Below, piece by piece: positions 15,501 to 61,439 of a stretch of DNA of 64,000 nucleotides. Under the pieces are notes generated by a model. The model was not told where the DNA came from and did not search any database. It worked only from the letters and a program-made list of their open reading frames with translations. Numbering within the stretch: position 1 is the stretch's first letter; the number at the start of each line of letters is the position of its first letter. Position numbers and translations under genes: made by a program. The DNA comes from Heterodontus francisci (lineage: Eukaryota): NCBI RefSeq assembly GCF_036365525.1, contig NC_090387.1:76321300-76385299 (forward strand), given 5' to 3'.

Positions 15501-16387
15501 TGTATTTAGCCTTACAGCTGCAGTCAGAGATACATTCTGATCTGTGTACTCTTGGTCAGGGCCTTTTATCTGCACTGGCATTGTGTACCCCAATAAGTCC
15601 CATGGGTTTACCCCGCAACTTTCAGCATTCTGCACAAAGGTGGCCCACCTTGTGACAATGGTAACACTTAGGCTTGTGGACCTCACTTCCACCCTCAGCA
15701 TCTTCCTTTCTGGTCTGAGGAGGAGATCCCAGGGCGTTCGCAGCTGTCCCTTCTTTTCTCTGCCTACTTGCTTTCCTTTCATCTCCCACCTTCTATCCTT
15801 CTTGGGCTAATGGGGGTGATGGACAAAGGATTTGGGCTTATACAGAAACTCATAATCATCAGCAATTGCTGCTGCTGATCTAGCCATTGAAACCTTTTGG
15901 TTCTCTACATGGGTTCTTACTAACAGAGGGAGTGAACTTTTAAATTCTTCCAGGAGAATTAGTTCCCTCAGGTTTCCATACATGGCTTCCATCTTTAATG
16001 CCCGTATCCAATGATCAAAATTAATTTGTTTTACGTTCTCAAATTCTGTATAAGTCTGCCTCGACAATTTCCAGGGGTCCCAAAATTGTTGCCTGTATGC
16101 TTCAGGGGCTAACTCATATGCAGTGAGAATAACCTTTGTTGCCATCTCATAAATCTGCAGACGCCTCCTCAGAAAGCATGGTATATACTTCATGGGGTCA
16201 GCCCATCAACCTGCTTTGCATAAGCAGTGTTCAGCTTTCCTTCAACCACTTCATCTGTCTGGCTATCTTTTCAAAAGAAATGAAAAATGCCTCTATGTCC
16301 CTTTCCTCAAACTTAGGGAGGGCTTGCACAGATTTAAACAGCTCTCCACTGAGTCCTAGATCTGGAGCCAGATCTTTCTTCACCAGT

Positions 16388-20938: not shown

Positions 20939-21886
20939 ATGGCAGGAGATCTCAGACCCGTATCATGCTCCTCTTGCTCAATGTGGGAGCTCAGGGACAT
21001 GGCTGATGACCCTGGCTCCTTCACGTGCAGGAAGTGTGTCCAGCTGCAGCTCTTGTTAGACCGCATGACGGCTATTGAGCTGCGGATGGACTCACTTTGG
21101 AGCATGCGCGATGCTGAGGAGGTCGTGGATAGCACGTTTAGTGAATTGGTCACACCGCAGATTAGGATTGCTGAGGGAGAAAGGGAATGGGTGACCAAAA
21201 GGCAGAGAAAGAGCAGGAAGGAAGCGCAGGAGTCGCCTGCGGTCATCTCCCTCCAAAACAAGTATACCGTTTTGGATACTGTTGAGGGAGATGGCTCACC
21301 AGGGGAAGGCAGCAGTAGCCAGGTCCATGGCACCGTGGCTGGCTCTGCTGCTCAGAAGGGCGGGAAAAAGAGTGGAAGGGCTATAGTCGTAGGGGATTCG
21401 ATTGTAAGGGGAGTAGATAGGCGGTTCTGTGGTCGAAAACGAGGCTCCCGAATGGTATGTTGCCTCCCAGGTGCATGGGTCAGGGACGTCTCAGATCGGC
21501 TGCAGAACATTCTAAAGGGGGAGGGTGAACAGCCAGTTGTCATTGTGCACATAGGCACCAATGATATAGGTAAAAAACGGGATGAGGTCCTACAAGCAGA
21601 GTTTAGGGAGTTAGGAGCCAAGTTAAAAAGTAGGACCTCAGAGGTAGTAATCTCAGGATTACTACCAGTGCCACGTGATAGTCAGAGTAAAAATGAAAGA
21701 ATAGTCAGGATGAATGCGTGGCTTGAGAGATGGTGCAGGAAGGAGGGGTTCAGATTTTTGGGACATTGGGACCGGTTCTGGGGGAGGTGGGACTATTACA
21801 AATTGGACGGTCTACACCTGGGCCGGACTGGAACCAATGTCCTTGGAGGTGCTTTTGCTAACGCTGTTGGGGAGGGTTTAAACTAA
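20939..21886 (+). CDS. CR1 ORF1p (zinc finger, coiled coil, SGNH esterase), 315 aa
   Basis: CSSC..CRKC zinc finger, heptad region, and SGNH blocks VGDS, PGA, HIGTND, DGLH. Confidence 0.93.
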   Translation: MAGDLRPVSCSSCSMWELRDMADDPGSFTCRKCVQLQLLLDRMTAIELRMDSLWSMRDAEEVVDSTFSELVTPQIRIAEGEREWVTKRQRKSRKEAQESPAVISLQNKYTVLDTVEGDGSPGEGSSSQVHGTVAGSAAQKGGKKSGRAIVVGDSIVRGVDRRFCGRKRGSRMVCCLPGAWVRDVSDRLQNILKGEGEQPVVIVHIGTNDIGKKRDEVLQAEFRELGAKLKSRTSEVVISGLLPVPRDSQSKNERIVRMNAWLERWCRKEGFRFLGHWDRFWGRWDYYKLDGLHLGRTGTNVLGGAFANAVGEGLN

Positions 21887-34973: not shown

Positions 34974-37949
34974 GATGTTACATGGGAGATCGGCAAACTT
35001 CTGCTCGAATTATTGGCTGAACATCTGTAGAACTGATTAACAGTACTGCAGATTAAACTAGGGTTTGAATTTTCTTGTGGGATGGTCAGCGCTAACGTCA
35101 ACGGTAAATCTGCGAATCCCTGGAAAAGTGCTGTCGATGGCATTTATCCTGCTTCTCCAGGGTTTCCGTCAATGTTTTGCCACAGTTATTGCGGGAAATC
35201 GGTAGAAACCTCCGCAGAAATGCCACGCAGTCAATTGAACGTCATTAATCTGCAATGGCGGCATTGGTCGTACTGCATAAATCACAATGTAAAGTCCTGG
35301 CATCCGTCTTATTCATCAGCCATTCATCTACAAATGCACTGGACTTCATATCCAGTTGAGAATGCGCATTTTTACTGTCAAATAGCTTTAGATTTATTGA
35401 ATTATGAAAGTGTTGAGGGCAAAATCATCAGATAATTGAGGAGAAACTATTGCATTCATTTTGGCGAGAGCGGTGCATTGCCCACTGCCCGATAATAGAG
35501 CGAACCTCTGTTGATGCCCTCAGTGTGCAGGTTGCATTCTGGAATCGGAAAGTGTGTGCGTGAGGGGGCGAGGCTGCAGCTCCACATCCTAGCATTTAAT
35601 ATGTATCTTCGTTCACTGGTACAATTGCTCAGGTGTGGAGGGTCACTAGGATAAGGTCAACGCTCCTTGGAAAAGGAGGGCCATTAAAGAAGTCCTAAGA
35701 GGAAGTTCCAAGGAAATCTTTGATCCGAGCCCCAAAGAAAGAGTCATTGATCCGGTCCTTAGAAGAGATCCACTGATCAGGTAGTGGAGGAAGTCACTAA
35801 TCAGATCCACCCATAAAGGGGGAATTTAGTTCCTAAAGGAGATTCATTCATCAACGCCTTTGAGAACAGTCATTCACCAGGTCTCGAGAGGACAGTGCCC
35901 AGAAAATATGTTACTTCTATCACTCAAACAAGTACCCCAGGTCAGAGAATATTAACAGCAATTAAAGTAAAGGACGCATGGGGAAATGATGCAAGTGGGA
36001 GTTATTGAATTAGCCGTCACTTACACGCCAGCCAGATTTTCATTTACTTCAATGGAAAGGAAAATCAGGCGCGGCTAATTCAGTATCAACCAGTTCACAG
36101 CATCGCCCAACGTTAGAATTACCTCCATGGACTCTAAAGTCTGCTGAATTGTAACTAGAAGCAATTTCATTTCCCATAATCTTATCGCTGATACCAAGGA
36201 CTTAACTTACACAATCACTTTGTTTAATATACATTGCACTGAAAATCTTTTATTGAATACATTCCATGACGATACAAACCGAAATAACCGATTTCAATGA
36301 AAAGCTGGCATGCGACATTATTAAATGTTTATTTCTTTGATTTTAAGCAGAAACTCGGCTCCAAAAGTTTGCAAAATATGTCCATGCTGTGATAAAATCA
36401 AAATTGTAATAGTCGTAATACAGCCCGTGGAGGCTGACAGCAACTATTTTAACTCGATACTCAGTGCTACAGGAAACATGTGACTTTGTACGACAGTGTA
36501 AAATGGATGATAGTGAGTCGGCAGCCCGTTTTACATCTCTCCCCATTTTTATTCCCATTGACCTGTACTCCCATTGAAATAAAACTCGGGAGAGATGTAA
36601 ACGGTGATGCCAACACCCATTTTGCACTATCTTACAAAGTAAAAATCTACCCCCATCGTACTTGAAAGTCATAACCTGTACAGAAATCCAGTCTTACAAC
36701 TTCGTTGGAGACAATGAAATCTTCCGCACAGTATGCCATATGTCAGTTGTTCCCTGCGTGACCTGCCAAAGAAGCACAACACTCGATACTGGAGTAATTA
36801 AAGCAAAATACTGCAGATGCTGGAAATCTGAAATAAAAACAGAAAGTGCTGGAAATACTCAACAGGTCAGGCAGCATCTGTGGAGGGAGATACTGGCCGT
36901 TGATTGAATTACTGATTACGTTGATCAATTACTACTTGCTCCCAGCCCCACCAATCTTACCCGCCCTCTCCCAAATGTACTGATATGCTTCGCTTCAATG
37001 TCCGCGGTACAGTCTCTGAGATCTTGCCCAAGTGGATAACTAGCAAGGGCAAGTTTAGACAGGAAAGGGTACAAAATCCTCCAGGGCGATAGCGAATTAT
37101 TTTTGAATTCTGCCTCATTCGCTTTTCTACAATGAAAGTAACAAATCGGGCAGAGCGTAAAACGGACCGTCGATTCGCGATGGCCCGAATCATGCTGCTG
37201 TCATTATGTTAGTAGAATTTTGAACTCAAGAGAGGTGGACATCACAGCCAAACATATCCTAAACACCACACGTGAAGTCTTTCCGAAGGAATCGCTGATA
37301 GGGACCGAGCGTTTGACCTGGCTGATTCCACCCTTCCTCGTCAAGATCTACGGAATTGGAATCTACTCCTCCTCCCCCCAACAACTCCCACCGCACCCCC
37401 CACCCCCACCCCGCCACCTGCAAAATCCGCTCATTAAGCATAGTCCTGGGATGGAATCTGAGACCTTCCTACTCTGTGCCTACAGCCTTTGACAACAGGA
37501 CTATTGGTTATTGGCTATGTTTAACCAGAAACATATTGGAAAATGCATTTCTTTCAACCTTTAATGTGCTTATCAGGTTATCCCCAGTCTAATAATAGCA
37601 GGATCATCAGCGCAAGTTCATTTTGCCGGTAAGCACGGTTGAATCAGACTCCAATCCAACTTTCAGGTTATCAATCAACAAACATCTGGCAGATTGAATC
37701 TATTGATCTTTGCAGACACGTTTTCCGCGCACCCAGGCCTAAACGTAAAATCTGGTTCTGAATATTTTACTGAATTGCTCAATATGTGTTGACCAAGCTG
37801 AACAGTCCGGATAACACACAGTGCGGAGGGACGTATCTGCTCTCGCTTGCTGTAGCCAAATCACGAACACTATTGAACAAAAATGCATTTACAATATCAC
37901 CAAACAAACATCAGAACAATTGTTCCTCATTTAAAGCAATTTGAGTACC

Positions 37950-38370
37950 AGCCGTGGCTCAGTTAATAGTACTCTGCTTATGTGGTACGCAGTTGTGAGT
38001 TCAGTTCTCGCTCCAGGGCTGGAATACACAAATCTAGGCTGACACTCCATGCTGCTGCACTGTCGGAGTTGCCTTCTTTCGGATGAAACAATAAACCGAA
38101 GCCTTTCTGCTCTCTCAGGTGGATTTAACAGCTCCCATGGTACTATTTTGCAGAAGAGTTATTCCTGGTGTCCTGGCCAATATTTATCCCACAACACAAA
38201 TTGCCTAGTCATTATCACTTTGCTGTTTGCGGAATCTTGCTGCGCGCAAATTGGCTTCTGGTTTTCCTACATTGCAAAAGTGATTACACTTTAAATGTAC
38301 TTCATTAGCTGTAAAGCGCTTTTGAAATGCCCGTGGTCGTGAAGGGCGCTATGTAAATGCAAGTTCTTTA
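37950..38370 (+). mobile_element. Old Deu-domain-type SINE remnant (related pieces at about 27120-27545, 46330-46720, 63700-64000)
   Basis: Degenerate tRNA-like head, GGCTGACACTCC..CTCAGGTGGAT body, TGTAAAGCGCTTT..GCGCTATGTAAATGCAAG tail. Confidence 0.55.
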
Positions 38371-38479
38371 CAAAATTGTTTTGAAACAATAATTGGCCCT
38401 GTAACCAAGCGGTTGGAGTTTACTCCCGTTTAATAACTAGGGGAAATTTCCTCTGGTTGCTATTTCTAGTGAAATTTTT

Positions 38480-38728
38480 AAATTTATTTTATTTGTTTAG
38501 AGATACAGCACTGAAACAGGCCCTTCGGCCCACCGAGTCTGTGCCGACCAACAACCACCCATTTCTCCTAACCCTGCAGTAATCCCATATTCCCTACCAC
38601 CACTAGGGGCAATTTACAACGACCAATTTATTTATCAACCTGCAAGTCTTTGGCTGTGGGAGGAAACCGGAGCACCCGGCGAAAACCCACGCACTCACAG
38701 GGAGAACTTGCAAACTCCGCACAGGCAC
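38480..38728 (-). mobile_element. HE1-type SINE, 5'-truncated
   Basis: Reverse complement of the HE1 body and tail. Confidence 0.87.
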
Positions 38729-40124
38729 TAAATGTTTAAATGTTTAAATTTAAATTTAAACATTTAAATCTTAAATGTCTTCTTTTAAAACACTTCCACT
38801 GTTTTCCTAGAACATGAAAATCCTCCAAATTTCTTCGCAACGTTGCGAACCCATAGTGATCAGAGTTCTTTGTGAGGAGATATAAATGACAGAACTTTGG
38901 ACCAGCTATTGCCCCGAAATAATATCCCATTACTTTCAATGTATAAATTGTGGATAAATTTCCACCTTCAAATAACATTCATTTTCATCTACTCTCGGTG
39001 AACGCGACGTTATTTGCTGATTTACAACGAAGATTTGATGTGTAAAGCGGCATGTGTAAAGATGCACTGTGGTAATAAACGTATTTCTCACCTTTGACAG
39101 TACCTCCGCTTAAAATAATCCCCAACTATGACTATCAGCACCATTATTATCACTATACCGAGACACCATTATTATCACTAACTGCCGAGACACCAAAAAG
39201 AGGGCAGCGACGTTAGCAGCACCTACAAACAAAGAGTAACGGCGATATAAGACCGACGGGCATTAATGTCAATTAAACCAGCAAGAAAACCCAGGGATAC
39301 ACGGGATCAGAACTAATCGTGTAAAGGCCATTTAATAAAAGTACAAATATAAATATTCAAATAAAATGCCAACAAGTGAAACAATTCACAATCTGACCAA
39401 AATTTCGTCTATGTAATAAACGAATTCAGTAACATCAAATGCTAACATGTGTTCACAAACGTGTGCTTGTATTAAGAAAAACGATGAAGGAGCGAACGTT
39501 GCTGAAAAATCAATTGACGATAGCTTCAAAGTTGTAACTAACACTGGCTGGAGTCTGAAGAAAGGCATGAGACAACTGGCAGCTGTATGTAGCTCCACTG
39601 TGGGATGGCGCCGTACCATTAAAGTGCTGGAAATTTCATACAGTCCCACTCTGGCTTGCTGTTTAGTCGTTTTGATTCCGGTTACAATATTTGCATTATT
39701 CTGATACCAAGCCACATTGAGGTCTTCAGGGTAAAACTTAGCTGTTTTACACAGGAGAATCGGAGAAGTGGATGGACGGAATTCAGTTTCAACTAAGTCG
39801 ATCTTCAGAGGAGTGGGCGGAACTTGAGAGGAAAAGAAAATTATTTTATGTTTGAAACATTAATTTTTTATTTCTGTCGTCTATTATGTAGAACGCGAGT
39901 TAGGGACGGGACCCTTTAACATCATGTTTCATTGGAAATATTTCCAAATATTATGAAACAGGAAGCTAGAAATTACATGGAATCCGAATCATAGAGCAAT
40001 CGATCGTAGAAGGAGGCCATTGGTTTATCTTGCCTTTGTTGACACTTTGAAAGAGTTATGCAATTGGTCCCACCTCCTGCTCTTTCGCTATAGCCCTGCA
40101 AAATTTTCCTTTTCAAGTACATAT

Positions 40125-41620
40125 CCAGATTCGGGCAAGGTTCCATTGGATTGGAAAATAGCAAACGTAACTCCTTTATTCAAAAAGGGAGGGAGACAGA
40201 AAGCAGGAAACCACAGGCCAGTTAGCTCAACATCTGTCTTCGGGAAAATGTTAGAAGCTATTATTCAAGACGTTAGAGCAGGGCACATAGAAAAATTCAA
40301 GGTAATCAGAGTCAAGATGCTTTTGTAAAAGGGAAGTTATGTTTAACCAATTTATTCGAGTTCTTTGAAGAAGTAACATGTGCTGTGGATAAAGGGGAAC
40401 TGGTGGATGTACTGTACTTAGATTTCCAGAAGGCATTTGATAAGGTGCCACATCAAAGTTTATTGCAGAAAATAAAAGCTGATGGTGTAGCGAGTAACAT
40501 ATTGGCATGGATACAAGTTTGGCTAGCTCACAGGAAACAAAGAGCAGGCATTAATGGGTCATTTTCTGATTGGCAGGATGTAACGAGTGGTGTGCCATAG
40601 GGATCATCCAAGTCACTTATATAAATTGCAAAATGTTGAGGCCTCAACTTTTTGCAATTTATATAAATGACTTGGATGAAGGGACAAAAGGTATGGTTGC
40701 TAAATTTGCTGGTGACACTAAGATAGATAGGAAGGTAAGTAGTGAAGAGACATAAGGAGGAGGATGTAGACAGCTTATATGAGTGGGAAAAGATCTGGCA
40801 AGAGGACTATAATGCGGGAAAATGTGAAATTGTCCATTTTAGCAGGAAGAATTAAAAAGAAGCATAATATCTAAATGGTGAGAGATTGCAGAACACTGAG
40901 ATGCAGAGAGATCTGCGTGCGCTAGTGTATGAAACACAAAAGGTTAGTATGAAAGTTCAGCAAGTAGTTAGGAAAGCCAATGGAATGTTATTGTATATTG
41001 CGAGGGAATTGAATACAAAAGTAGGGAGGTTATGCTTCAGTTATACAGGGCATTGGTGAAACCACATCTGGAGTACTGTGTACAGTATTGGTCTCCTTAT
41101 TTAAGGAAGGATGTAAATGTGTTGGAAGCAGTTCAGAGAAGGTTTACTGGACTAGTACCTGGATTGGGCGGGTTGTCTTATGAGGAAAGGTTGGACAGGC
41201 TACGCTTGTCTGCATTGGAGTTGAGGAGAGTAACAGGCAATTTGATTGAAACACATAAGATCCTGACGGGTCTTGACAGGATGGATGTGGAAAGAATGTT
41301 TCCCCTTGTGGAAGTATCTGGAAGCATGGTCACTGTTTAAAAATAAGGGCTAACCCATTTAAGACAGAGATGAGGAGAATTTTTTTTCTCTGAGGGTCAT
41401 GAACTCTCTTCCTCAAAAGGAAGTGGAAGCGGAGTCTTTAAATATTTTTAAGGCAGAGGTAGATAATTTCTTTATAAGCATGGATTTGAAAGGTTATCGG
41501 GGGTGTGGAGTCAAGGTTACAATCAGATCAGCCATGATCTTTATAAATGGCGGAGCAGGTTCGAGGGGCCGAGTGGCCTACTCCTGTTCCTAATTCGTAT
41601 GCTCGTATGTATGTTCTATA
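40125..41620 (+). mobile_element. 5'-truncated CR1 LINE nested in an older minus-strand CR1 3' end, gene 2 intron
   Basis: RT fragments (DFQKAFDKVPH, KFAGD); TTCGTATG-type tail. Confidence 0.9.
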
Positions 41621-41687
41621 TCCAGTTCCCTCTTGCAAATTACTATTGAATCTGCTTGCTTCCAGATCGTGAATTCCAGATCAGAGC

Positions 41688-41724
41688 AGTTCTGATGAAA
41701 GGTCACAGACCTGAAACGTTAACT
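41688..41724 (+). ncRNA. Minimal type-I hammerhead ribozyme motif in a Penelope-like repeat (repeat extends to about 41826)
   Basis: AGTT-CTGATGA-A-AGGTC-ACA-GACCT-GAAA-C-GTT-AACT: catalytic core, stem II, palindromic stem III and stem I AGTT/AACT. Confidence 0.65.
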
Positions 41725-43620
41725 CTGTTTCTCTGTCCACAGATGCTGCCAGACCTGCTGAATATTTCCAGCACTTTATGTTTTTATTTCAGATTTCCAG
41801 CATCTGCAGTATTTTGCTTTTATTAGATCACAGCAGCCTGCCGTGTAAAACAATTTCTCCTCCCCTCCCTTCTTGTTCTTTTGCCAATTATCTTAAATCT
41901 GGGTCCTCTGGTTACCAACGCAAAGTGGTCTGGTTATAGAGTCATGTGACTTTACAACGCGGGAATCCATTTGGCTCAGTGTGCTGGTGTCGGCTCTGAA
42001 AGAGCAATCCTGTTAGTCTCACTGACATATTTATACTCCCTTCAGCCCTTTAGGTATTCCCGTCAGATCAGTTAAACTGCTTATTTCTGTTCTAATATAT
42101 TCTGTCCGTTTCCAAACATCATCTCCCGATGATCCGCTGTAACGTTAGAGGAAGAGCTGCGGGAACCAAAGAAAAACAAAGTTCCCTAGGGTTTTGGAGA
42201 ATCCCCCATGTAATGTTGAGAGGAACATGTGGCCGCTTTGCGCAGGAGCACGGTAAATATATTTACAAGGAGTTCTTGTGGTTTTGTTTCCAGTGAAATC
42301 ATAAAGTTGTTCCAAAACACTTACCATCTCGAGAATAAAGTTTCGTGCTCATTTTAATACTAAGTTGTAGTGACCACAGTAGAAATTCCCTGTTTGCTAT
42401 TTCTAGCAAAATTGTAGGAGTTTTGCGAAGAAATATTTGGCCAGAGAAGAGGAAATATCCATCCAGAAACCATCCCATAATTAGCAAATATTGGGGAAGG
42501 TTTTGACTTTGTTCCACAATGGAAACTGGTCGAGAGTCAGTCGGCAGTCCCTCTTACATATCCCCTATTTTTATTCCCACTGAATTTGGAACCACTAACT
42601 TGCTATCAATTGTTCTACATTATCTACACATTGCCTCTGAAGGGGGAAGGTTTCCTCCCTTGCACTATGTAAGGAAATTGTAAATCTTTAAAAAATAACT
42701 GATTACATTGTACAAAATACATGCAGAAAAGCCTGCCGTAAATTGACAATCTCAGCTCTCGAGTGGCTTGATGCTGACACTGGATACACTGGGCCGGTGT
42801 TCCATTCCCGCACGCTTTTCTACCTCTTTGATATTTTCCTAAATACCTGTTGCACAACTGACACTTGTAACATCAGCACCAGCGACTTACTGGCCACAAG
42901 GAGCTCTGAACCGGTTCCATTTCCAAACATTCCTCCCGGACAGTACACGGAGCAGTAATAACGGCCTGAATCTTTGAAGCTGACATTCAAGAGATGGATG
43001 GCGGCTCCTTTTTTCAGAATGTTTTTACTGTCTCTTGCTCGCTTCTCCGTCGTCCAAGAACTCGTCATCACCATGTCGCCACCATTGAACCTTTACATCT
43101 GATTCCTCTTGAAAGACGGGGAACGTGCAGTGGAAGATGATGTTTACTCCTTTGAGTGCAACTTTGAGTGGAGGGATGTGGCCGACTGTGGATTCCCCAA
43201 CAACTATCAGAAAGCCAATGGAAACATAAAAATAAGCATCTCATTATACAAATAAATAAAGATAGAAACAAGGTTAAAAAGAATCGTGAAATATAACAAC
43301 GATAAACCGTGAATGGCGATAAATTCACCGATCAAATAATATCACGCTCCATATAGTGTTCTTATCTCTATCTTGTAAATACCGGTGTGTGTAATCCCCA
43401 AGATCAATATACCGGGAAGCATTTCGGATAATGGAATTTGACTGAATTCACAACCCTTTGAGCGAAGAAATTTCTCATCCCATTCTTAAATGACTGACAC
43501 CTTCTCCTTAGACAATGACCTCGTGTTCTAAATTCTCCAGTCAGGAGAAACAGCTTCTCATCATCTATCCAGTCACTTCACTCCCTCTAAGAATTTTATT
43601 AGTTTCAATCAGTTCACCTT

Positions 43621-45075
43621 TAGATTGGAAAATAGCGAATGTAACGGCTTTATGCAAAAAGGGAGGGAAACTACAGGCCAGTTAGCTTAACATCTGTCGT
43701 AGGTAAAATTTTAGAAATAATTATCAAAGATGTTATAGCGGGGCATTTAGAAAAATCTATGGTAATCAGGCAGAGTCAAGATGGTTTTGTGAAAGGGAAG
43801 TCATGTTTAACCAAGGTTTTGGAGTTCTTTGAACGTGTTACATGTGCTGTGGGTAAAGCGGAACCAGTGGATGTATTGTACTTAGATTTCCAGATGGCAT
43901 TTGATAAGGTGCCACATCAAAGGTTATTGCAGAAAATAAAAGCTCATTATGTAGGGACTAACATACTGGCATGGATAGAAGATTGGTTAACTAAAAGGAA
44001 ACAGAGAATAGGCATACATGGGTCATTTTCTGATTGGCAAGATGTAACGAGTGGTGTGCCACAGGGATCAGTGCTGGGGCCTCAACTTTTTACAATTTAT
44101 ATAAATGACTTAGATGAAGGGCCCGAAGGTATGGTTGCTAAATTTGCTGATGACACAAAGATAGGTAGGAAAGTAACTTGTGAGGAGGACATAAGGAGGC
44201 TAGAAAGAGATATAGATAGGTTAAGTAAGTGGGCAAAGACCTGGCAAATGGAGTATAATGTGGGAAAATGTGAAGTTGTTCACTCTGGCAGGAAGAATAA
44301 AAACGAAGCATATTATCTAAATGGTTAGAGATTGCAGAGCTCTGAGATTCAGAGGGATCTGGGTGTCCTAGTGCATGAAACACAAAAGGTTAGTATGAAG
44401 GTACAGCACGTAATTATGAAAGCTAATAGAATGTTATCGTCTATCACGAGGGGAATTGAATACAAAAGTAGGGAGGTTATGCTTCAGCTATACAGGACAT
44501 TGGTGAGACCACGTCTGGAGTATTGTGTACAGTACTGGTCTCCTTCTTTAAGGAAGGATGTCAATGCGTTGGCGACAATACAGAGAAGGTTTACTAGACT
44601 AATACCTGGAATGGGTGGCCTGTCTTACGAGGAGAGATTGGACAGGCTAGGCTTGTATCCACTGGAATTTATAAGAGTAAGAGGCGACTTGATTGAAACA
44701 TTGAAGATCCTGAGGGGTCTTAACAAAGTGGAAGTGGAAAAGATGGTTCCCCGTGTGGGAGAATCTCGAACTAGGAATCATTGTTTAAAAATAAGGGTTC
44801 ACCCATTTAAGACAGAGATGAGGAGAATTTTTTTTTCTCTCAGATGGTCGTGAGTCTTTGGAATTCTCTTCCTCAAAAGGCAGTGGAAGCAGAGTCTTTG
44901 AATATTTTTAAGGCAGAGGTAGATAGATTGTTGATTAGCAAGGGGGTGGAAGGTTATCGGGGGTAGGTGGGAATCTGGAGTAATCAGTTCAGCCACAAAC
45001 CTATTGAATGGCGGCGCAGTTTCGAGGGGTCCTGTGGCCTAATCCTGCTTCTAATTCGTATGTTCGTATGTATGT
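43621..45075 (+). mobile_element. 5'-truncated CR1 LINE nested in an older minus-strand CR1 (about 43430-45655)
   Basis: ORFs 43759-44853 with GVPQGSVLGP and FADD; (TTCGTATG)n tail. Confidence 0.92.
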
Positions 45076-46045
45076 TCACCTCTCAGTCTTCTAAACTCCA
45101 GAGAATATCGGCCCAGTCTATTCTATCTCTCCTCATAGAACGGTCCTCTCATCCCAGGAATCAGTCTAGTGAACCTTCATTGTAGGTCCTCTCAGACAAG
45201 TATATTCTTCCTTAGGTAAGATGTCCAAAACTGTACACAGTACTCCAGGTGTGGTCTCACCAAAGCCCAATATAATTGCAGGAAAACATCCTGCACTTAT
45301 ACTCAAATTTCCTTGCAATAAAGGTTAGCATACAATTTGCTTTCCAAATTGCTTGTAATAGCTGCATCTTAACTTCGTGTGATTCATGTACAAAGACATC
45401 GAAATCCCTTTGAATATTAACATTTACTAGTTTCTCACCTTTTAAAAAATATTCTGCTTTTCTATTCTTCTACCAAAGTCGATACTTTAGGATACTCCAT
45501 CTGCCGTGTTCTTGCCCAATCACTTAACTGGTATTTATCCTTTTGCAGCCTCTTTTCATCGTCCTCACAGCTTACTGTCCCACCTAGCTTTTTGTCATAA
45601 CGTACATTAGATATATTAAACTCAGTCCCCTCATCTAAGTAACTAATATAGATTGTGGGATATCATTTCCCCATGTGATGATAAGATGCTTGTGGGAAAA
45701 TTCTCTGACTGCTATTTCAACTCTTGGTGTTAACCTTCTATTTTAATACAGTGTAGTGCAATTTCACCCATTAAGTGTTGAGCAGAATTATTTTTCTGAG
45801 AACAATTCTGTTATTCCCGCTATCCATAAAAAGGTACTTGACATCTGATGAGATGTTTGGTACAAACCAGACTGCGATGACTGATTAGTATAACAGCGGC
45901 TTATGCTGACTTAACTTTGGCATTATTTGAAGTGTATTTTTATCCAGTAGTATGGAGCATGTTAGTTCAAGTATCCCCTTGCATAATCAATGGATAATAT
46001 AGCTGAACACTCTTGAAATAGCCTCTGTGGGGAACCTTTTACTGA

Positions 46046-48775
<2,730 letters not shown>

Positions 48776-51700: not shown

Positions 51701-51831
51701 TCATGGCTTTGTAAACCCTGCTCTCGGCTGGTTCTATAATGGGTCGACGACCAAATCCACCAGTTCATCGTCTCAACATTGAAGGTGAAAATCAACACTT
51801 CACCAACCCCTCCCAACATACACATACGAGA

Positions 51832-52054
51832 TAAAAGCAAAATACTGCGGATGCTGGAAATCTGAAACAAAAACAAGAAATGCTGGAATCACTCAGCAGG
51901 TCTGGCAGCATCTGTGGAAAGAGAAGCAGAGTTAACGTTTCGGGTCAGCGACCCTTGTTCCGAAGAAGGGTCGCTGACCCGAAACGTTAACTCTGCTTCT
52001 CTTTCCACGGATGCTGCCTGACCTGCTGAGTGATTCCAGCATTTCTTGTTTTTG
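51832..52054 (+). mobile_element. Palindromic Penelope-derived non-autonomous element; 14-bp TSD ATACACATACGAGA
   Basis: TSD at 51818-51831 and 52055-52068; central hammerhead-like motif with a CCGAAGA core. Confidence 0.8.
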
Positions 52055-52189
52055 ATACACATACGAGACGCGTGTGATGCTCCAGAACGTTACTCCTTAG
52101 TTTAGTTGCAATAAATGAGAACATTCAATGGTGCATAATCAAATACAGTGGACCGACATCCAGAAATAGTCCAGTTCTTCGGACTGTGT

Positions 52190-52336
52190 TTAGTTTCTGA
52201 GCTTTCTCTCTTTCTTTATCACGTTTACTTCAGCATACACTGCGCTCTTGTCTTGTTTAGGTTTTGATGTTTTCTTGGAATCAGCAAGCTGCAGAGCGGC
52301 GTAAGTCAGCTGGTTATCACCGCCTCTTTGTTTAGT
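52190..52336 (-). CDS. Gene 1 exon 7: terminal exon with ITIM LTYAAL and AVYAEV
   Basis: TACTTTTACAG| acceptor; TKQRGGDNQLTYAALQLADSKKTSKPKQDKSAVYAEVNVIKKERKLRN followed by stop. Confidence 0.87.
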   Translation of the reverse strand, partial: TKQRGGDNQLTYAALQLADSKKTSKPKQDKSAVYAEVNVIKKERKLRN

Positions 52337-55300
52337 CTGTAAAAGTAATATTTCGTATCACCCGTTAGTCTATTGCCTACTCATTGGTTGAGGTAATCGA
52401 GGTTTGAAAAAGGCTGCAGTGAAATTTCTTCACATCAATTACCAACTTCAGATTGTAACCGGATTTTGTATTGGTTTATTTCTCCAGTTTCTCCCTTCTC
52501 TGCAAACGATTCATGTTGCGTTCCAATTCCAGACCCTCCCCTAAATCTTATTAGTATTCCGCTTTAACCTTCATATAAAATTAGTTCTGATGAAAGGTCA
52601 CAGACCTGAAACGTTAACTCTGTTTCTCTCCCCATAGATGCTGCCAGATCTGCTGAGTTTCCAGCACTTTCTGTTTTTATTTCAGATTTACAGCATCCGC
52701 AGTATTTTGCTTTTCTAAAACTAGTTCTCCTGCTGAAGCAGCCCATTTCAGTGAGCAGACTAGATACCTCAATTAAAATAGAAAAATGAATTTCATATTG
52801 GTCTGTTAAGGGTATTTGGAATGATGATATAGTAAAGCACCGTTTTAAGGCCCTGTTGTTTGAGCCTCGACAGCCAATGTGACCCTTAACCCAAAGGCGA
52901 GGCTCCAAGGTCACATTTTTCAGCCGCCTTTCCCTTACCCCCGCTGATCTCTGAGACATGAAGGTCAAAAATGATGCACCTTGGCTGAGATCAGCTGGCA
53001 CAGCACAATGGCAGATTAAACTTGGGATCTTTGCTTTTTCTGCAGCTCAGTGTCGTACCACTTAACACTTCTGATGTATCAATGAATGGTCTGAGCTGTA
53101 CCTGGGCTTACACCGTACTCTGCTCCTTCTGTCGGTGTTTCGCATTGCTCCTGGTCCTGGTTTCGACAGTGGCGCAGGGCAATTCTTGTTTCGTCTGTAA
53201 AATAGATATTTGCCAGTCTTACCAGGTGAGTTTCTTATTTTGCAATTTGTAATCGTTATTACAGCCAGACCCGGAAAAGAAATGGTGCTAATTGTGACTG
53301 CTGTCGTGTGAAACGGATGGATAGAGTCCGCAACCCGTTTTACATATCTGATGATTTCTATTTCCATGCAAGTCAGCGGGAGAGATGCCGATTCGCCAGC
53401 ACTCGTTATATACTGTCCTATAAAGTCAACACTACCTCGGTAAATTCTGTATAGCTTGTTAGAGTTGACTCTGTTATCACAGAGTGTTGATTTTGTGTGG
53501 AAATGTTTTGGATATCATTCGCGCCAATCGCTCGCCCTACCTGGGGATAGACGGTGTGCTCTCCCTTATGTTTACGATTGGGGGGTCCTTTGTCATCTCT
53601 CAAGTTTAGAGGAGCGTAGGCGGTAAGTTGTTCACTTGGTCCTTGTCTAACCTGTAAAAATGAGATATGAAATACTGATAGTTAGAGTCTAATAAAGCAG
53701 CCAGCTATCATCAATTGGAACTGAGTCTGAAAGTGTCAATATGGAGACAGTAACCGATAAAATTAGGGCTTAATTGCATTCTGCCCACTCACAATGATTT
53801 TATTCAATATCTCACCCATAGGGTGAGGAATAATGTTCCAAATATGAAATCCGGATCATTCAAATATTCTTAATCCTCAGTCAGCCCAGTCTATTGGAAG
53901 ACCTTACAGGCGGAGCCTGAAATTGTCGTAATTCGACTTCCAGTCACTTCCATCCCGAGCTGGAAATCAGCCGCTGGGACCTTGGCCATTCACCCCTCCC
54001 GCCGCAACTACCCAACCCAAAGACTTGCAGGTTGATAGTTTAATTGGCCATTATAAATTGTCCCTAGTATAGGTAGGTGGTAGGGACAGGTGGGGATGTG
54101 GTAGGAATATGGAGTTAGTGTAGGATTAGTATAAATGGTTGGTTGATGGTCGGCACAGACTCGGTGGGCCGAAGGGCTTGTTTCAGTGCTGTATCTCTAA
54201 ACTAAACTAAACTACCCCAGTGTTTCAGAGTTCAGGCCAATTAGGTCCCGATAGCACTGTTCCAGCTCAGTCACCAGAGTTGGGGACGGCATTGGGACCT
54301 TCCAAATCTAAAAGCAAAATACTGCGGTTGCTGGAACTCTGAAATATAAACAGAAAGTACTGGAAACACTCAGCAGATCTGGCAATATCTGCGGAGAGAG
54401 AAGCAGAGTTCATCTTTCATGAAAGGTCACAGACCTGACACGTTCCCTCTGTTTCTCTCACCTGCCTAATCTGTCTGGTTGCGCTGCACAATATCTCAAT
54501 TAAGCAACAGGGCATCTCCGATTTTTAAAATAATTTGAATTATGAAAGAGAAAGTGGTCAGATGTGTATGTTGAAGTAAAGACAAATATTTATCGTGTCT
54601 TGACGGGTAGTATACTGTGCAAGTAGTGACAGCATGTACTTTCACGAGTTTTGATACTGTACAAGTAGTGAGAGCTTGCACTTGATTTAGTGTGTGAATA
54701 AAATATTGATATACCTTTCACCAATCAGATTCCGCGGATTCTTTAAGACTAGAGTGTGTGTTAGGCACAACAATAATCAGGGTGGATCGGGATGTTTTTA
54801 ATGCAGTCCGCTATTGTGATCTGTAATGCACTGCCTGAAAGGGTGGTGGAAGCAGATTCAATAGAATCTTTCAAGAAGGATATATACTTGATATGAAAAA
54901 AATGTCGGGCTATTGGTAACAAGTCGGCGAGTGGGACTAATTGGATAGTTATTTCAAAGAGCCGGCACAGGCACCATGGCCTCCTTCCTTGCTGTAGGAT
55001 TCTACGATTCTGTGAAATTTAATTAATATCTTCTGGACGGAATGTAAAATTTCTTGCTATTTCCCGCCTCATTTTGGACGATGAGAACATTGTCACCCTA
55101 CCGGCTCTTCAGCCTGACCCGCTTCCTCAGAATTTTTCTTACTGCCTGAGGGAAAGAGAAGACAACATTGAATAGCTTAATCAGTGTATCAGCAAAACAA
55201 TATCATGCTTAACACAGGTAAAGTAAGGAGACTTGAAGGTACAAATCTCTCTGAACATTTTAAGCAGCACCAGCTATTACAGTGCAACATGCTGTGCATT

Positions 55301-58300
55301 ACCTTCGCATACCCCGCAGTGGCGCTGCACCCAATGGAGTCGACCTTGTCTTTGTGTGACAGTGTAAAACAGGGTTGTCCAACATTTTGCGAAGTTGTGG
55401 GGCGGGGGTCGGTGGGGTGGGGGGTCGTTGCGAGGGGAGAGACAATACAGTTTTTGTCTTACATAGGGGGCCGGTGAGAAGAAAGCAGCAAGATGAAGGC
55501 ATTAAAAACTGATCTTGCTATTAATCAAAGGGGCAGCACAGTGGCGCAGTGGTTAGCACTGCAGCCTCACAGCTCCAGCGATCCGGGTTCAATTCTGGGT
55601 ACTGCCTGTGTGGAGTTTGCAAGTTTTCCCTGTGTCTGCGTGGGTTTCCTCCGGGTGCTCCGGTTTCCTCCCACAAGCCAAAAGACTTGCAGGTTGGTAG
55701 GTAAATTGGCCATTATAAATTGTCACTAGTGTAGGTAGGTGATAGGGAAATATAGGGACAGGTGGGGATGTGGTAGGAATATGGGATTAGTGTAGGATTA
55801 GTATAAATGGGTGGTTGATGGTCAGCACAGACTTGGTGGGCCGAAGGGCCTGTTTCAGTGCTGTATCTCTAAACAAAACAATTGTACATTTTTGTGAGGA
55901 AGCTTTAAATTAGAAGATTCATTGATTGACTGACTTTCTCATCATTATGTTGGACACTGACTTAGTGAGATACCTGGCAGTTTTTGTTTGCATATGCAGT
56001 CAATGTTTGTCCACACACTTGTAGTGATTCAGAGTATTCCAGATAGATGTCCATCTGTCAGGAATGATCTTGATCAGTCTTTCTCCCTCTCTCTCCTTGT
56101 CTCCCTCTGTCCCCCTCTCTGTGTTCCCCTGCACTGTGTTGTTCCCCTGCACTGCGTTGTTCCCTCCTCTATGTCGTTCGTGCTGTCTGTGTGCCCCCCC
56201 CCCCTCACTGCCCCCTCTTTCTCTCTCTGTAACCCCCCTCTCTCTATCACTCGCCCTCCCCGCACCCGCGCACCGCCGCTCTCTGAGAGTTGCAGAAAAC
56301 GGAACGGTCAGCAGAGCAGCTTTGTGGTTGATCAGTTTTTTTCAAAAAATCGCAAATCATTTTCACAACTGACTGGTGCTGGGAGCTGAGACAGCGGTTT
56401 TCCAGCTTAGGACAGATTCGGGGTTTTCCGGCCGTTTTCGACTTTTTTTTTTATAAAGCGTGCTGGAATACCCCGAATCTGTTCTAAGTTCGGAAACTGC
56501 TGTATTCGCTCCCAGCAACTGTCAACTATGAAACTGACTTGCAATTGTTTTTTTTTTAAAAGTCGGTCTGGAAAAAGAAGCCAATGAGAATTTTTTTTTT
56601 CTCTGAAATTGTCAGTCACAGATTCCTGGCGAGGATGAGGAATGGTTCGATGCAGTTTACATCCGTGGTCGGATGGAAACCTTAGACAGGCCGGATTCCG
56701 GCCCGGGGCGGTATGTTGGATATCCCTGGTGTAAAAGATGTAGTAGAGAGTCGGCAGCACATTTTACATTTCAAAATTACAATGAAAATAAAATCCGGAT
56801 GAGATGTAAAATAGGTTGCCCTTACCAATTCGATATCATCCATTTTACATTATCGCAGAAAGTCAAAATATACTTCAAAGTGTTTACACTTCAAGATCTG
56901 GACCCGAAATGATAGCAAAAAAAATGCATAACGTTAAGGATTCCGGGTGTTGCAAAATAGAAGTGAAAAAGTCGAATGAATAGTTGGAATAGGAAGGTGA
57001 AATAATTGCATTTCAAAATGCAGTATACATGGTCATATTCAACTACCAAGCATATAAAGCTCTTGTGCTATAAACTTCATTCTTTGAACATGCAGTAAGG
57101 TGTCCTTTATTCTTCGACAATGAATGACGATCCACCTGCCCTTTCTGTATTGTAAAAATACAACCAGGCCTTAGAAAATAAAAGTATTCGGTGGAATAAG
57201 AAATATTCTTACCATCTGATGTCTTTAATTTGAGTCTCGTCAAAATTATTATTAATAGTAAAATTGCCAGTATGCTCCCGGCACATCCAAAAATCAGCAG
57301 AAAATCATTATCAGTACCTGTAGGATTAACAGATAATTGAAATAAGGAACTGTCGAGCACAGGGAGATATATACACAGAGAATCGTGGGTCAGGCAAGGG
57401 AGGACGAGTCGCAAAGGTGTCTCTCGGGGTAACGGTTTCTACTGTCAGTGGGGCTGGACCGCTTTTATTTCTAAGGGTAGTATATCATCATGTGTACCAA
57501 ACAATGACAACTGTAATTCAGTAATGCAATTTATGGAGAAAACAAATCCTATTCCATAAAGGCACGTGAAGCTTCGCTCTGCACGTGAGGGTTGTTTATT
57601 AAGAGTAAAGGGAGTTACACTTTTTTTACCTATCAGTGCGACACCAGACTGATGCGCAACGGCTGCAAAGGTGGCAAAATCTTCCATTCTTCAGCGCTGA
57701 CATTCCTCGGCAGTGTGACTAGAGAATACCGGCTGTACTACTTTTAGTAGTTAACAAGTAACTTGCATTTATGCACCGCCTTTAACATCATAAAACGTCA
57801 AAAGGCACTTCACAGAGAATCACCAAACAAAATTGTAAACCGAGCCACAATAAGAGGATATGAGGAAAGGTGGAGATAGAGTTCAAGGAGCGTCTTAAAG
57901 GAGAGGTCGGGAATTTTAAAGTTTAGGATGTAGACAACTGAAGGTATGGTGCGCAGAGAACAGATTAACATGATATTTCCATATATTCAATTTAAATTCA
58001 TGATTTGTAAAGTGACTCTGGTAGAACAGATCCATTTTATGTGTAGTTTCATTTTATTTGGCAAGAATTTGAAGAGGAATAATCTTTCAAGTTTTGAGCA
58101 GCGCGCAAATCAACCTCCCGTTTCAGTTCGCTTCAGGGGTATACTCTCCTTCCTTCACCTACAAACCATCTTGAATATTTTATTTCGTATCCATTGATGT
58201 GTCATTGAGAGTAAATACAGTCCACATTCACTCCGTATTCTGGAGTTTGAACAGTGTTCCAGTTACCTGTCTAATAAGTAAATACAGATTGAAGTAATTA

Positions 58301-61300
58301 TCACTTTCCCCGCTGTACATATTTGCAAACGTACCTCGATTGACGGTGTAGCTGACACTGGCAGGTACCAGAAGGGACACATGAGATGCCAGACAGGTGT
58401 AAACAACTTCATTCGGGGCAGGTTGTACTTCTTCCAAAAAACTGGAAACCTCATAAAGTCCCTCTGCGTTCCTGCTTTTAACAGTTTCGTTACCGCTCAG
58501 AATTTCGACACCATCTCTTAACCAGGAGATTTCTAAATGCTCCGGGTAAAAGGCAGCCGTTTTACATTCGAGTTTCGGATGAGTCGCTGAAATTCCTTCA
58601 ACAGGAACAATTTTCAGCGGGGTCGGGGGAACTTTAACAGAGAGAAAAAAAAGTTTTAATTTAAAGGAACACATTCTCATTTTCTACCCTTCTAATGCTG
58701 TTACCCTTCGACAGTTAGTGCTGTCGTTCTTTAAACTTTATGTTCGGATTTATTTTATAAATTGTTGTACGGCACACAGCAAAATAGCGGGATGTATTAC
58801 AAACAATGGACAAAGAGGATGATACTCCAAGCGCGAGTTACAATCAGGAAAGCAGATGCCACTGCTCTGAATGGAAGTATAGGATCCTGGCGCGGGATTG
58901 GTGTTAGCAGTAATGACCCCAAATGAGATTACTGTCCTAATATATCGGAGTGAACGCAAACCAGTTCACACGAACAGCGGAATCGTCCCTCCTTATTCTG
59001 TAAGAATCATTGCCGTACTGAACATTTTGTGTGTTTATTTCAATATTGGCCGTTTTCGAATATTCTATATATTTCAAAACATATTTTCTTTTAGCAGTTA
59101 ATATTGAGAAGATGATGTGTGTAATCAAAATATCTCTGATGTCGATATTGAATCCAGACAGGATGTTGTTATATGCATAGATTATGCATTCCAATATTTC
59201 CGCGTCTATGGTGGAGATTTCAGATCGTGCAGCTTTCACCTAAGGAACTTTCTCCAGAGGGGGAATCGAGGGCTGAAACGTTTTTCACCTTATGAAAGGG
59301 TTATATTGGTAATTATATATCAATGTGTAGATCACAACATCCATACAGAAGAGGGAAACATAATGGGAAATCCTAACTCAGAGTGCATGTTTTATATAAT
59401 TCCAGGGGTTTCGCCCTTCCCCATGTTCATTCGGTCTGTTTAACACGTTTTGCCGCGAGAAGATTCTGCTCATATCGTTCCTACATTCACCATTAACTAA
59501 TACGAACCTGTGTCCGCTCGATCTCCAGTCACTGTTTAGCTGGAAGGTCAGGCCCTTTATAGCTTTGCATTGTTTTGCTAATTTATTACAATCTCCTTAA
59601 TATTTTCTCTTTACACATTTACTTTTCCGAATTGCATTCTATTACTTGTAGTAATAGAAAATTATTAAATTAGGGACATTATTAACTTGCAAAATTATAT
59701 TCACCTTTATTCCCAACAAAGGCTCAGAATTCCTCCATTCTTTTACCAGGGATCTGCTGCAGAGATAATATGCAATGCAGCAGAATTTCAGTGGAGATGG
59801 ACGGCGGAGTTCTTTTGATCTCTTGCCATAATTTCCGTGTGGGGTTTGGGGAGTGTAAATGGAAATCATGAATTACAAATACTGGAGCCCAGGCGTTTAT
59901 ACAAATGTTCCGTGGTGTCCTTCCAGTATTTGACGGGTTGTGAGCGCATAAAAGAAAATCCAATTGGCGCACGACAGAGGTTCAAACACGGGCATTGGGT
60001 AGCTTCACTATTTTGCAAGTTGGAGGACTTGAGGTGGAATCCAGCACTGAGGGCAAGATCGACACCCCATTCTGACTGGGTTATAGGATTCATTTGTAAA
60101 AAGAGGTTGGTATCTCAAACAACTTATTACTCGACACAAGTGCACAGCATAAATTGACATAGGAACAGGAGTAGGCAATTCAGTCCCTCGAGCTTGCTGT
60201 GCCACTCATTTAGATTATAGTTGATTCGCTCATTAACTCCATTTTCCTAACATAATTCCTTTCCCTTGCTACCCATACCTAACAAAAATCTATCCACATC
60301 AAATATCGGAGAAGTTGGTAAAGAAATATTAGATCGGCAGTTTTGAGCAGTGAAAAGGGCTCTGGTGCGAGAAATATTCACGGCGGTAGCAGAAACGTTT
60401 TCACTTGAGTTTGTAACGAGTCACCTTTTTGGGGTGGATTAGATGGTCTTTAATGTTGTATAAAAGACTCAACCTAGGAGGTAAAATTATTCCTATTGTT
60501 GCACGTTGGCACCGCTATTTTGGTGAGAAGGAACGTGGCCATCTTATCTTATTGATTAATTTCAAACTAAGGTTTAAACATCCTTTTCCACTAACTTGTC
60601 TTAATAACAATTGTACCTGCACCAAAAGCACTCATTGGGCGAAAAGCACTTTGGAATGTTATGAGGACAATGAGCTGGTGAAATTGGTCTTTAGGCACTA
60701 GCGCAAAACTGGCGATCGCAAATCAGCGGTTGTTGTACACCGGGGTCAATGGAAAAGAAAATCCCGAGATGTGTAAAACGAATTTGTTGTCAGCCAGTTT
60801 TCGTCCAGAGAAATTACATATATTGCACACAGCTGAAAAAGTCCCACTCCCTGGTACAATGACACTTACCGTACACAGTAAGCTGCGAACCACTTCCATC
60901 TCCAATGGATTCGTTAGATTTTACATGACAGTAATACATTCCGGAGTCTGCAACACTCGCATTCAGAATATCAAATGAACTACTTCCCTTTTTTACATGA
61001 AATCGCTTTCTGCTGTCTGGTTGCAGAAACAATGCCTCGCCGCGTTTCCACCAATAAACATCGAGATTATATTGAATTAGCGAAAATGTGCAGAACATGG
61101 AAACATTCGCACCTCTGGCAACGTTCAAGAATTTAGGGAACTGTTCCACTTTCTTCGAAGTTACTTCAGTGGCTATTAGAAAATAAACAAGAACGGTGGT
61201 AACAGTTGTGTACATAATTTAAAGAAAAATAACTAAGAGAAATAAAACACAAAACCCATTAAAAACACCAACAAACGAATTGGAGAAACACAATATCTAA

Positions 61301-61439
61301 TTTTGTAATGCATAACAATTGTAGAATCTTCTAAAATATGGTTTAAGCTATTCTGAAACGGCAGCATATACTAACTAAAGGTACCTGGCCAAACCATTCC
61401 CAAAAGAGCCATGTACTGAACTGAAGCTCTCAACGACAT
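52190..61439 (-). CDS. Gene 1: intact V(J)-C1-TM-ITIM immunoglobulin-superfamily receptor (SIRP/NKp30-like), about 353 aa, 7 exons: 61385-61439, 60870-61172, 58335-58631, 57213-57317, 55102-55145, 53541-53651, 52190-52336
   Basis: All introns are GT-AG with matching phases (1,1,1,1,0,0). Exons total 1062 nt with no internal stop. Leader MSLRASVQYMALLGMVWPA; V domain C..YWWK..DSGMYYC..GDGSGSQLTV; C1 domain CKTAAFYPEHLEISW..YTCLASH; TM FLLIFGCAGSILAILLLIIIL; tail motifs TAYAPL, TVYPQ, LTYAAL, AVYAEV. Confidence 0.88.
52583..52619 (+). ncRNA. Minimal type-I hammerhead ribozyme motif (repeat extends to about 52715)
   Basis: Same 37-nt motif as 41688-41724. Confidence 0.65.
53541..53651 (-). CDS. 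Gene 1 exon 6: cytoplasmic tyrosine motifs 1-2
   Basis: TTTTTACAG| acceptor; VRQGPSEQLTAYAPLNLRDDKGPPNRKHKGEHTVYPQ; |GTAGGG donor; 111 nt. Confidence 0.8.
54016..54213 (+). mobile_element. HE1-type SINE, 3' part
   Basis: Matches the 3' half of 55531-55880; (CTAAA)n tail. Confidence 0.87.
55102..55145 (-). CDS. Gene 1 exon 5: short cytoplasmic linker
   Basis: Strong acceptor TCTTCTCTTTCCCTCAG|, encodes GSKKNSEEAGQAEEP, donor |GTAGGG. Converts phase 1 to phase 0 as the model requires. Confidence 0.72.
55531..55880 (+). mobile_element. Full-length HE1-type SINE in a gene 1 intron
   Basis: GGGCAGCACAGTGGCGCAGTGG head, B box GGTTCAATTC, CR1-like tail. Confidence 0.92.
57213..57317 (-). CDS. Gene 1 exon 4: transmembrane segment, uncharged
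   Basis: GTDNDFLLIFGCAGSILAILLLIIILTRLKLKTSD; CAG| acceptor and G|GTAAG donor, 105 nt. Confidence 0.88.
58335..58631 (-). CDS. Gene 1 exon 3: Ig C1-set domain
   Basis: Acceptor TTTTCTCTCTGTTAAAG|, donor G|GTACGT, 297 nt. CxxxxFYP, W, GLYEVSSFL and YTCLASH are C1-set hallmarks. Confidence 0.93.
60870..61172 (-). CDS. Gene 1 exon 2: Ig V-set domain with germline J-like G strand
   Basis: Acceptor TTTTCTAATAG|, donor G|GTAAGT, 303 nt. Canonical Cys, Trp and DSGxYYC; ends IGDGSGSQLTVY. Confidence 0.93.
61385..61439 (-). CDS. Gene 1 exon 1 (signal peptide)
   Basis: ATG at 61439 gives MSLRASVQYMALLGMVWP, then a phase-1 donor G|GTACCT about 210 nt upstream of the V exon. Confidence 0.75.

Follow-up and report, generated by a model that had tools for sequence, protein, structure and literature searches.

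The window analyzed here is the whole 64,000-nucleotide stretch of the horn shark, Heterodontus francisci (contig NC_090387.1, positions 76,321,300 to 76,385,299). It carries two neighboring immunoglobulin (Ig)-type receptor genes on the minus strand of a 99.65-Mb chromosome. Gene 1 spans 61439-52190 and has eight exons, which encode a leader split over two exons, a V(J) domain in one exon, a single C1 domain, an uncharged transmembrane (TM) segment and a tail divided among four exons. Gene 2 spans 43422-39088 and carries five lesions. We consider it probable that the two are neighboring members of a large chondrichthyan family of non-rearranging V(J)-C1 receptors, gene 1 being an annotated inhibitory-type gene with a cut tail and gene 2 a dead activating-type gene. 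A first-pass annotation of the window had described two same-strand paralogs with leader, V, C1 and TM exons, and both the stop-free stretches and tblastn within the window agree with this. The motifs that it listed as shared (PPTPLKI, CKTAxFYPExL, GLYExSS and PASVSY) are all present. The similarity between the two genes is well above chance, with 49% identity over 69 residues in C1 (tblastn E 9e-17) and E values of ~5e-5 for the V halves. The position given as one end of the locus, 61439, is the ATG of the gene 1 leader exon. Toward the other end, placed at 36669, tblastn in the window found no exon or family homology between 39088 and 36669.

The exons of gene 1 are listed below; proteins of the family are referred to by handles (P0161 and the like), and A1 denotes the family alignment.

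61385..61439, minus strand: exon 1, start codon and first part of the leader, 55 nucleotides, phase 1, GT donor at 61384; exact substring of P0161.
60870..61172, minus strand: exon 2, rest of the leader and V domain with a J-like G strand (GxGSxLTV), 303 nucleotides; P0161 residues 20-119.
58335..58631, minus strand: exon 3, C1-set Ig domain, 297 nucleotides, phase 1-1; exact match to P0161.
57213..57317, minus strand: exon 4, connecting peptide and uncharged TM helix with the family-conserved GCAG; P0161 residues 220-253.
55102..55145, minus strand: exon 5, 44-nucleotide cytoplasmic exon SKKNSEEAGQAEEP, phase 1 to 0; placed by tblastn of P0151 and P0161.
53541..53651, minus strand: exon 6, first tyrosine pair, LTAYAPLNL ... 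HTVYPQ; aligns with the family tail motifs (A1).
53102..53194, minus strand: exon 7, 93-nucleotide cassette, phase 0-0, with an in-frame TAA at 53110-53108; end of the RefSeq protein.
52190..52336, minus strand: exon 8, second tyrosine pair (LTYAAL, AVYAEV) and stop; translated only if the exon 7 stop is bypassed.

Gene 1 is annotated already. It corresponds to the RefSeq protein XP_067906041.1 (P0161) of Heterodontus francisci, a product of 333 residues named "tapasin-related protein-like". P0161 contains the translated leader, V, C1 and TM exons letter for letter, and in tblastn exons 5 and 7 agree with it at 100% identity. P0161 and its 83%-identical paralog P0151 served as guides for the exons, which were searched singly with P0161 standing in for the joined spliced model; the P0161 sequence was also used for the alignment and for the AlphaFold fold. 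Exon 5 is needed to keep the tail open, since without it the phase carried over from the TM exon leads to a stop in exon 6. The V domain matches the Pfam V-set (E 2.3e-10) and the following domain matches the C1-set (E 4e-9, 37 bits against a cutoff of 21). The J-like motif GxGSxLTV stands directly before the donor site of the V exon and is kept across the family. The TM segment is uncharged, as the first-pass annotation had read it. Apart from the stop in exon 7, the other exons and splice sites are intact and agree with the RefSeq model.

Two smaller features of these exons recur in relatives. The frame of the V exon stays open upstream of the normal acceptor (61215-61173, minus strand), with an ATG at 61215, and the paralog isoforms P0162 and P0223 contain extra residues equivalent to this stretch. 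Judging from these models, an alternative acceptor or start in the leader intron seems to be in use in the family. In addition, many members conserve a Cys within GC[AV]GG, where the uncharged TM segment has its outer end (57290-57280, minus strand; TM columns of A1), and this Cys may serve in lipid attachment, in a dimer contact or in neither.

The tail of gene 1 is shorter than first supposed. The first-pass annotation had counted four tail tyrosines, using a model that lacked exons 5 and 7, while the RefSeq product has only two. The TAA of exon 7 occupies the position at which the paralogs P0151 and P0163 read TVYAQ, in place of the Tyr, and the RefSeq tail therefore ends after the first tyrosine pair. 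A four-tyrosine tail would depend on splicing past exon 7; among paralog isoforms, P0162 does leave out tail exons. Alternatively, a GT located 12 nucleotides upstream of the normal exon 7 donor would, if used, bypass the stop in frame. Exon 8, which lies beyond the stop, is 96% identical to the tail of P0151. In exon 6, the two tyrosines are 22 residues apart.

RNA was represented by three contig-only runs from one sample, which were compared with 52100-58099. The contigs gave mostly repeat coverage. The bins of the TM exon and of exons 7 and 8 were thinly covered, and exons 5 and 6 had no coverage. A 108-nucleotide contig of run X1 spans exon 7 exactly from edge to edge with 3 mismatches and then runs into unlike sequence. 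This contig is most likely a spliced transcript of a paralog, and family members are probably expressed. The same runs drew attention to short repeats in the gene 1 introns (52500-52900, 53900-54300 and 55500-55900), whose word depths reach 10^4 to 10^6 and whose copies produce many false joints with one another. These repeats probably belong to an abundant, transcribed family resembling short interspersed nuclear elements.

Gene 2 was mapped against a live paralog, P0042/P0223, and consists of the following parts.

43383..43422, minus strand: exon 1, first part of the leader MLPGILILGITHT, intact, GT donor; 83% identical to P0042 (tblastn).
42891..43203, minus strand: V exon, 313 nucleotides (not a multiple of 3), halves in frames -1 and -2.
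39524..39822, minus strand: C1 exon, 299 nucleotides, halves in frames -1 and -3 that are 90% and 70% identical to P0042.
39088..39222, minus strand: TM exon with a 25-nucleotide tandem duplication, copy 1 at 39193-39167 and copy 2 at 39166-39142.

The first-pass annotation had noted the duplication in gene 2. Four more disabling lesions accompany it. In the V exon, what is a Tyr codon in the paralog has become TAA at 43027-43025, and a few bases past it a 1-nucleotide insertion at ~43020 causes a +1 frameshift. In the C1 exon, a 1-nucleotide deletion at ~39618 causes a -1 frameshift, and the donor has changed from G|GT to G|CT at 39523, with an in-frame TGA next at 39512-39510. The duplication itself (copy 2, 39166-39142) shifts the frame of the TM exon into a stop. 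What had been said of the TM segment stands: once copy 2 is removed, the exon reads an Arg-containing TM, then DYFKRRYCQR, then a stop. Its sequence marks gene 2 as a pseudogene: the original was an activating-type member with Arg in the TM segment and a tail of ~10 residues.

The closest live relative of gene 2 is the horn shark P0223/P0042 (XP_067906047/48), at 82-90% identity. No protein collected for the family matches gene 2 above 81-90%, and none of the family matches is a protein model of gene 2. Compared with the TM-Arg exon of Scyliorhinus, the TM exon of gene 2 shows weak positional similarity that is not significant (E 3). Downstream of gene 2 there was no match to the terminal exon that is conserved in other Arg-TM members.

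Both genes belong to a family that is real, unstudied and inconsistently named. An exhaustive HMMER search with the C1 exon of gene 1 returned hundreds of relatives, many of them 200-420 residues long with the C1 domain at about residues 121-219. A profile built from the 23 members of A1 recovered 85 proteins, all but one from cartilaginous fish. The family spans at least 15 species of sharks, rays and chimaeras (Heterodontus, Scyliorhinus, Chiloscyllium, Hemiscyllium, Mustelus, Cetorhinus, Heptranchias, Mobula, Hypanus, Hemitrygon, Narcine, Pristis, Amblyraja, Leucoraja and Callorhinchus), and in the horn shark at least 14 of its genes lie on the chromosome of gene 1. RefSeq names its members variously as SIRPalpha-like, SIRPbeta1-like, NCR3LG1-like (B7-H6-like), tapasin-related, Ig lambda-like, TCR beta-like, CD276 homolog and MHC class II-like. 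Most members have a single C1 exon, and a few (P0182, P0006) have a recently duplicated second one. In A1, the tail consensus consists of four motifs in the order xxYAxLNL, TVYAQT, LTYAAL and xVYAEV. The literature on shark SIRP, on shark paired receptors and on PRARP yielded no paper describing the family, which agrees with the suggestion of the first-pass annotation that it is uncharacterized. In reviews, PRARP is named as a VJ gene.

The two genes seem to have been copied together. The RefSeq accessions of gene 1 and of the genes for P0151 and P0223 are consecutive, and gene 1 has diverged from P0151 to a similar degree as gene 2 from P0223. This combination suggests that gene 1 and gene 2 are one copy of a duplicated two-gene block. 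As to other members, some live genes are modeled as V-C1 proteins without a TM segment: P0223/P0042 read through the C1 donor, and in the horn shark model P0164, C1 is followed by a terminal exon that is also present in Arg-TM relatives. This points either to soluble forms or to TM exons overlooked by the gene models.

Inhibitory-type and activating-type architectures both occur in the family. A simple classifier applied to 172 family representatives assigned 58 to a plain TM with tail motifs resembling the immunoreceptor tyrosine-based inhibitory motif (ITIM). About 29 of the 172 were assigned a charged TM and a short tail, in some cases on the basis of flanking residues. Intact Arg-TM paralogs, which the first-pass annotation had proposed to look for elsewhere, were found: the pattern PR[FL][IV]LGFLVIL...IIVDH recurs in Scyliorhinus, Heptranchias, Chiloscyllium, Mustelus, Cetorhinus and the horn shark P0035. 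A second charged pattern, LLISRC..., resembles the LFLVSRQ of gene 2. The Arg-TM forms include P0004, P0166, P0167, P0035 and P0125. On an ectodomain tree of 79 members, built with a quick method, the ITIM and charged types are intermingled, and the well-supported branches require at least 10 changes of type. In addition, near-identical ectodomains occur with opposite types in P0006/P0127, P0195/P0048, P0184/P0206 and P0035/P0187. Since interspersed types and near-identical opposite pairs are a signature of paired receptors, the paired inhibitory/activating idea of the first-pass annotation, read at the level of sequence, holds for the family.

The same idea does not hold for the locus, where the two genes do not form a working pair. 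On the ectodomain tree, gene 1 belongs to clade A (19 rows) and the proxy for gene 2 to clade B (60 rows); their V domains are 31-39% identical and their ectodomains 31-50%. Because they lie in different ectodomain clades, gene 1 and gene 2 are not a matched pair, unlike SIRPalpha/beta or KIR2DL/DS, whose members are matched. Gene 2 is dead in addition, and the tail of gene 1 is cut.

Comparison with known systems places the ectodomain near antigen receptors. Among PDB matches of the gene 1 C1 exon, UrIg2 was the best (E 4.7e-11), followed by IgA, MHC and SIRPgamma. The family profile matched IgA/lambda at 2e-32, UrIg2 at 6.5e-32, the SIRPalpha ectodomain 2wng at 1.6e-26 and lambda chains at ~1e-22 to 1e-24. 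In the AlphaFold model of P0161, the ectodomain has a pLDDT (predicted local distance difference test score) above 90 and forms two domains in the shape of a light chain, and a helix is predicted at residues 223-250. Foldseek with this model returned only light chains of antigen-binding fragments (Fab). A wide structure search gave B7-H6, butyrophilins, NCAM and others tied at Z ~15-16 and singled out no family. On these results the ectodomain is antigen-receptor-like, without assignment to one family. B7-H6, the butyrophilins and other V-C ectodomains are the top structural neighbors of the model at these Z scores; they are tied within 1 to 2 units, are 16-23% identical and share neither the J-like motif nor any tail similarity. 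The match to B7-H6 and the butyrophilins is one of fold only.

The claim of the first-pass annotation that the genes fit no known family was too strong. RefSeq names most members SIRPalpha-like or SIRPbeta-like, and the tail, which says more here than the ectodomain does, repeats the motif order and Tyr-Tyr spacing of SIRPalpha. Like the mammalian SIRPs (SIRPalpha/PTPNS1, SIRPbeta1 and SIRPgamma), the family combines a V domain, whose G strand is J-like, with a C1-set domain behind it; its inhibitory members have four tail tyrosines in two pairs, and sister members have a basic TM residue and a short tail. The known SIRPalpha motifs are ITYADL, TEYASI and LTYADL (PMC5413580), and in the SHP-2-binding peptide of SIRPalpha the tyrosines are 23 residues apart (PMC5589908). 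The spacing in gene 1 exon 6 is 22, a comparison at the level of motifs that carries no statistics. SIRPs differ in having two C1 domains (V-C1-C1), whereas both window genes and most members have one. As its basic TM residue, the family mostly has an Arg close to the outer third, and SIRPbeta1 has a Lys. The second motif of each pair ends in Thr in the family, not in Ile or Val as in SIRP. Direct searches with tails added nothing: a region-limited protein search with the P0046 tail found only the query, and a PDB search with the tail exons found nothing. The window offers no conserved flanking genes, only transposons.

UrIg and UrIg2 of cartilaginous fish resemble the family in their single-exon VJ, canonical split leader, C1-type domain and lack of rearrangement signals. 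UrIg has three C domains and a secreted form only, UrIg2 has nine to eleven C domains, and each is described as one gene (PMC12227049). The family differs from both in having dozens of genes, one C1 per gene, and ITIM or charged-TM modules. KIR, LILR/PIR and the teleost NITR form multigene clusters that mix ITIM-tailed members with charged-TM, short-tailed ones, and they evolve by birth and death with frequent pseudogenes. KIR and LILR have C2/I-type domains and NITR has V and I domains. We know of none among KIR, LILR/PIR and NITR with an antigen-receptor-like VJ and C1 ectodomain. In gene 1, the second domain is C1-set by Pfam and not I-type as in NITR.

Taken as members of this V(J)-C1 family, the two genes can be understood as follows. 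Each family member is built of a split leader, then V(J) in a single exon, one C1, a TM segment and a tail. In gene 1, the tail is cut past the first tyrosine pair unless exon 7 or its last 12 nucleotides are spliced out. By analogy with the motif order and spacing of SIRPalpha, the remaining pair, once phosphorylated, might recruit SHP-1/2. The Arg-TM relatives would couple to an adaptor with an immunoreceptor tyrosine-based activation motif (ITAM) and an acidic TM residue. The two-gene block would be a duplicate that is decaying by birth-and-death evolution.

Several observations weigh against this reading. The relationship to SIRP draws on automatic names, on PDB scores no better than those of Ig lambda and on tail motifs. 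The first motif of gene 1 has Thr at -2 (TAYAPL) and the second has Thr at +3, and neither is a textbook ITIM. RNA specific to gene 1 was not found in the three contig runs of one sample, and the low coverage that was seen could be that of paralogs. Both RefSeq isoforms of P0223/P0042, the live relative of gene 2, end just past C1 and have no TM exon, and the Arg-TM exon may be unused even in this live copy. Finally, the exon 7 stop may mean that gene 1 itself has started to decay.

This last point leads to the alternative that survives best, namely that gene 1 is also becoming a pseudogene, with the exon 7 stop as its first hit and the whole locus a decaying duplicate block. With the stop, the last exon and its LTYAAL, the only canonical ITIM, are lost from the product, the neighboring gene is dead, and the region is packed with insertions of long interspersed nuclear elements (LINEs). 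On the other hand, the remaining exons and splice sites are intact, and one tyrosine pair remains complete in the truncated tail. Exon 7 has the form of a phase 0-0 cassette, P0162 provides a precedent for skipping tail exons, and the last exon has stayed nearly the same as that of the paralog. We regard decay of gene 1 as unlikely on balance, with a minor but appreciable chance of being right.

Far less credit is due to the proposal that adjoining clade A and clade B genes encode the two chains of a heterodimer, like a heavy and a light chain, and not a brake and an accelerator. A clade A gene does adjoin a clade B gene here, and the arrangement may recur at the P0151/P0223 locus by accession order. 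In addition, the live clade B paralog is modeled without a TM segment, and the closest structures are Fab light chains. However, such structural matches are generic for V plus C1 proteins, accession order is only a hint of gene order, and the clade B partner in the window, gene 2, is dead. We consider the heterodimer very improbable.

It is slightly less plausible still that gene 2 is intact in the animal and that its lesions are assembly or sequencing errors. Three of the five are insertions or deletions, the type of error made by long-read assemblies, and one stands beside a run of A's. The other two are substitutions (the Tyr codon to TAA and the donor GT to CT), and it is unlikely that a chromosome-level assembly would contain five independent errors within 4.3 kb. 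Moreover, the tested exons of gene 1 agree exactly with RefSeq, and gene 2 has no protein model among the family matches. Least credible of all is that gene 1 and gene 2 form a working inhibitory/activating pair at this locus: they adjoin on the same strand, belong to the same family and show an uncharged TM with tail tyrosines next to a TM exon that encodes Arg once its duplicate is removed, but the sequence already speaks against such a pair. Gene 2 carries a premature stop codon, a frameshift in V and another in C1, a destroyed splice donor and the duplication that shifts its TM frame, the ectodomains are of different clades at 31-50% identity, and the gene 1 tail is truncated.

Read as two neighbors of the V(J)-C1 family, one tail-cut and one dead, the window makes a modest contribution. 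It gives an example of birth-and-death turnover, with a tail-cut copy beside a dead activating-type copy, and no new kind of system. The family itself, with dozens of inhibitory and activating genes in sharks, rays and chimaeras, is of interest to comparative immunologists. The search for the ancestor of antibodies and T-cell receptors looks to non-rearranging, joined VJ plus C1 genes as its relics, and SIRP is one of the few such VJ-C1 families in mammals. A bolder idea, which we hold only tentatively and think doubtful, is that the family is the cartilaginous-fish counterpart or an older sister of SIRP, and that A/B neighbors might even encode two cooperating chains. If the family did stand in such a relation to SIRP, a germline-joined brake/accelerator system with the shape of antigen receptors would have been present at the base of jawed vertebrates, alongside UrIg.

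The rest of the window is occupied by transposons, and no recognizable host gene was seen in its first 36 kb. One LINE remnant lies directly upstream of the gene 2 start codon.

43440..43577, minus strand: LINE 3' fragment, whose translation resembles the C-terminal end of open reading frame 2 (ORF2) of the LINE in the window.

LINE reverse-transcriptase fragments at 40020-41593, 43759-44853 (+) and 45169-45662 (-) occupy the V-C1 intron of gene 2 and the space upstream of it. Elsewhere, the model of family member P0035 has a fragment of the LINE reverse-transcriptase type fused to its N-terminus. Remnants of retroelements of the long terminal repeat type are found at 6893-8667 and 13101-16193 (minus strand), with a gag-like ORF containing a zinc knuckle and an integrase-core/SH3 ORF. 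An apparently intact LINE lies at 20939-24840 on the plus strand. Its ORF1 encodes 315 residues with a GDSL-esterase/OSK domain, and the adjoining ORF2 encodes 984 residues with endonuclease and reverse-transcriptase domains. Since both of its ORFs are open, this element may still be active.

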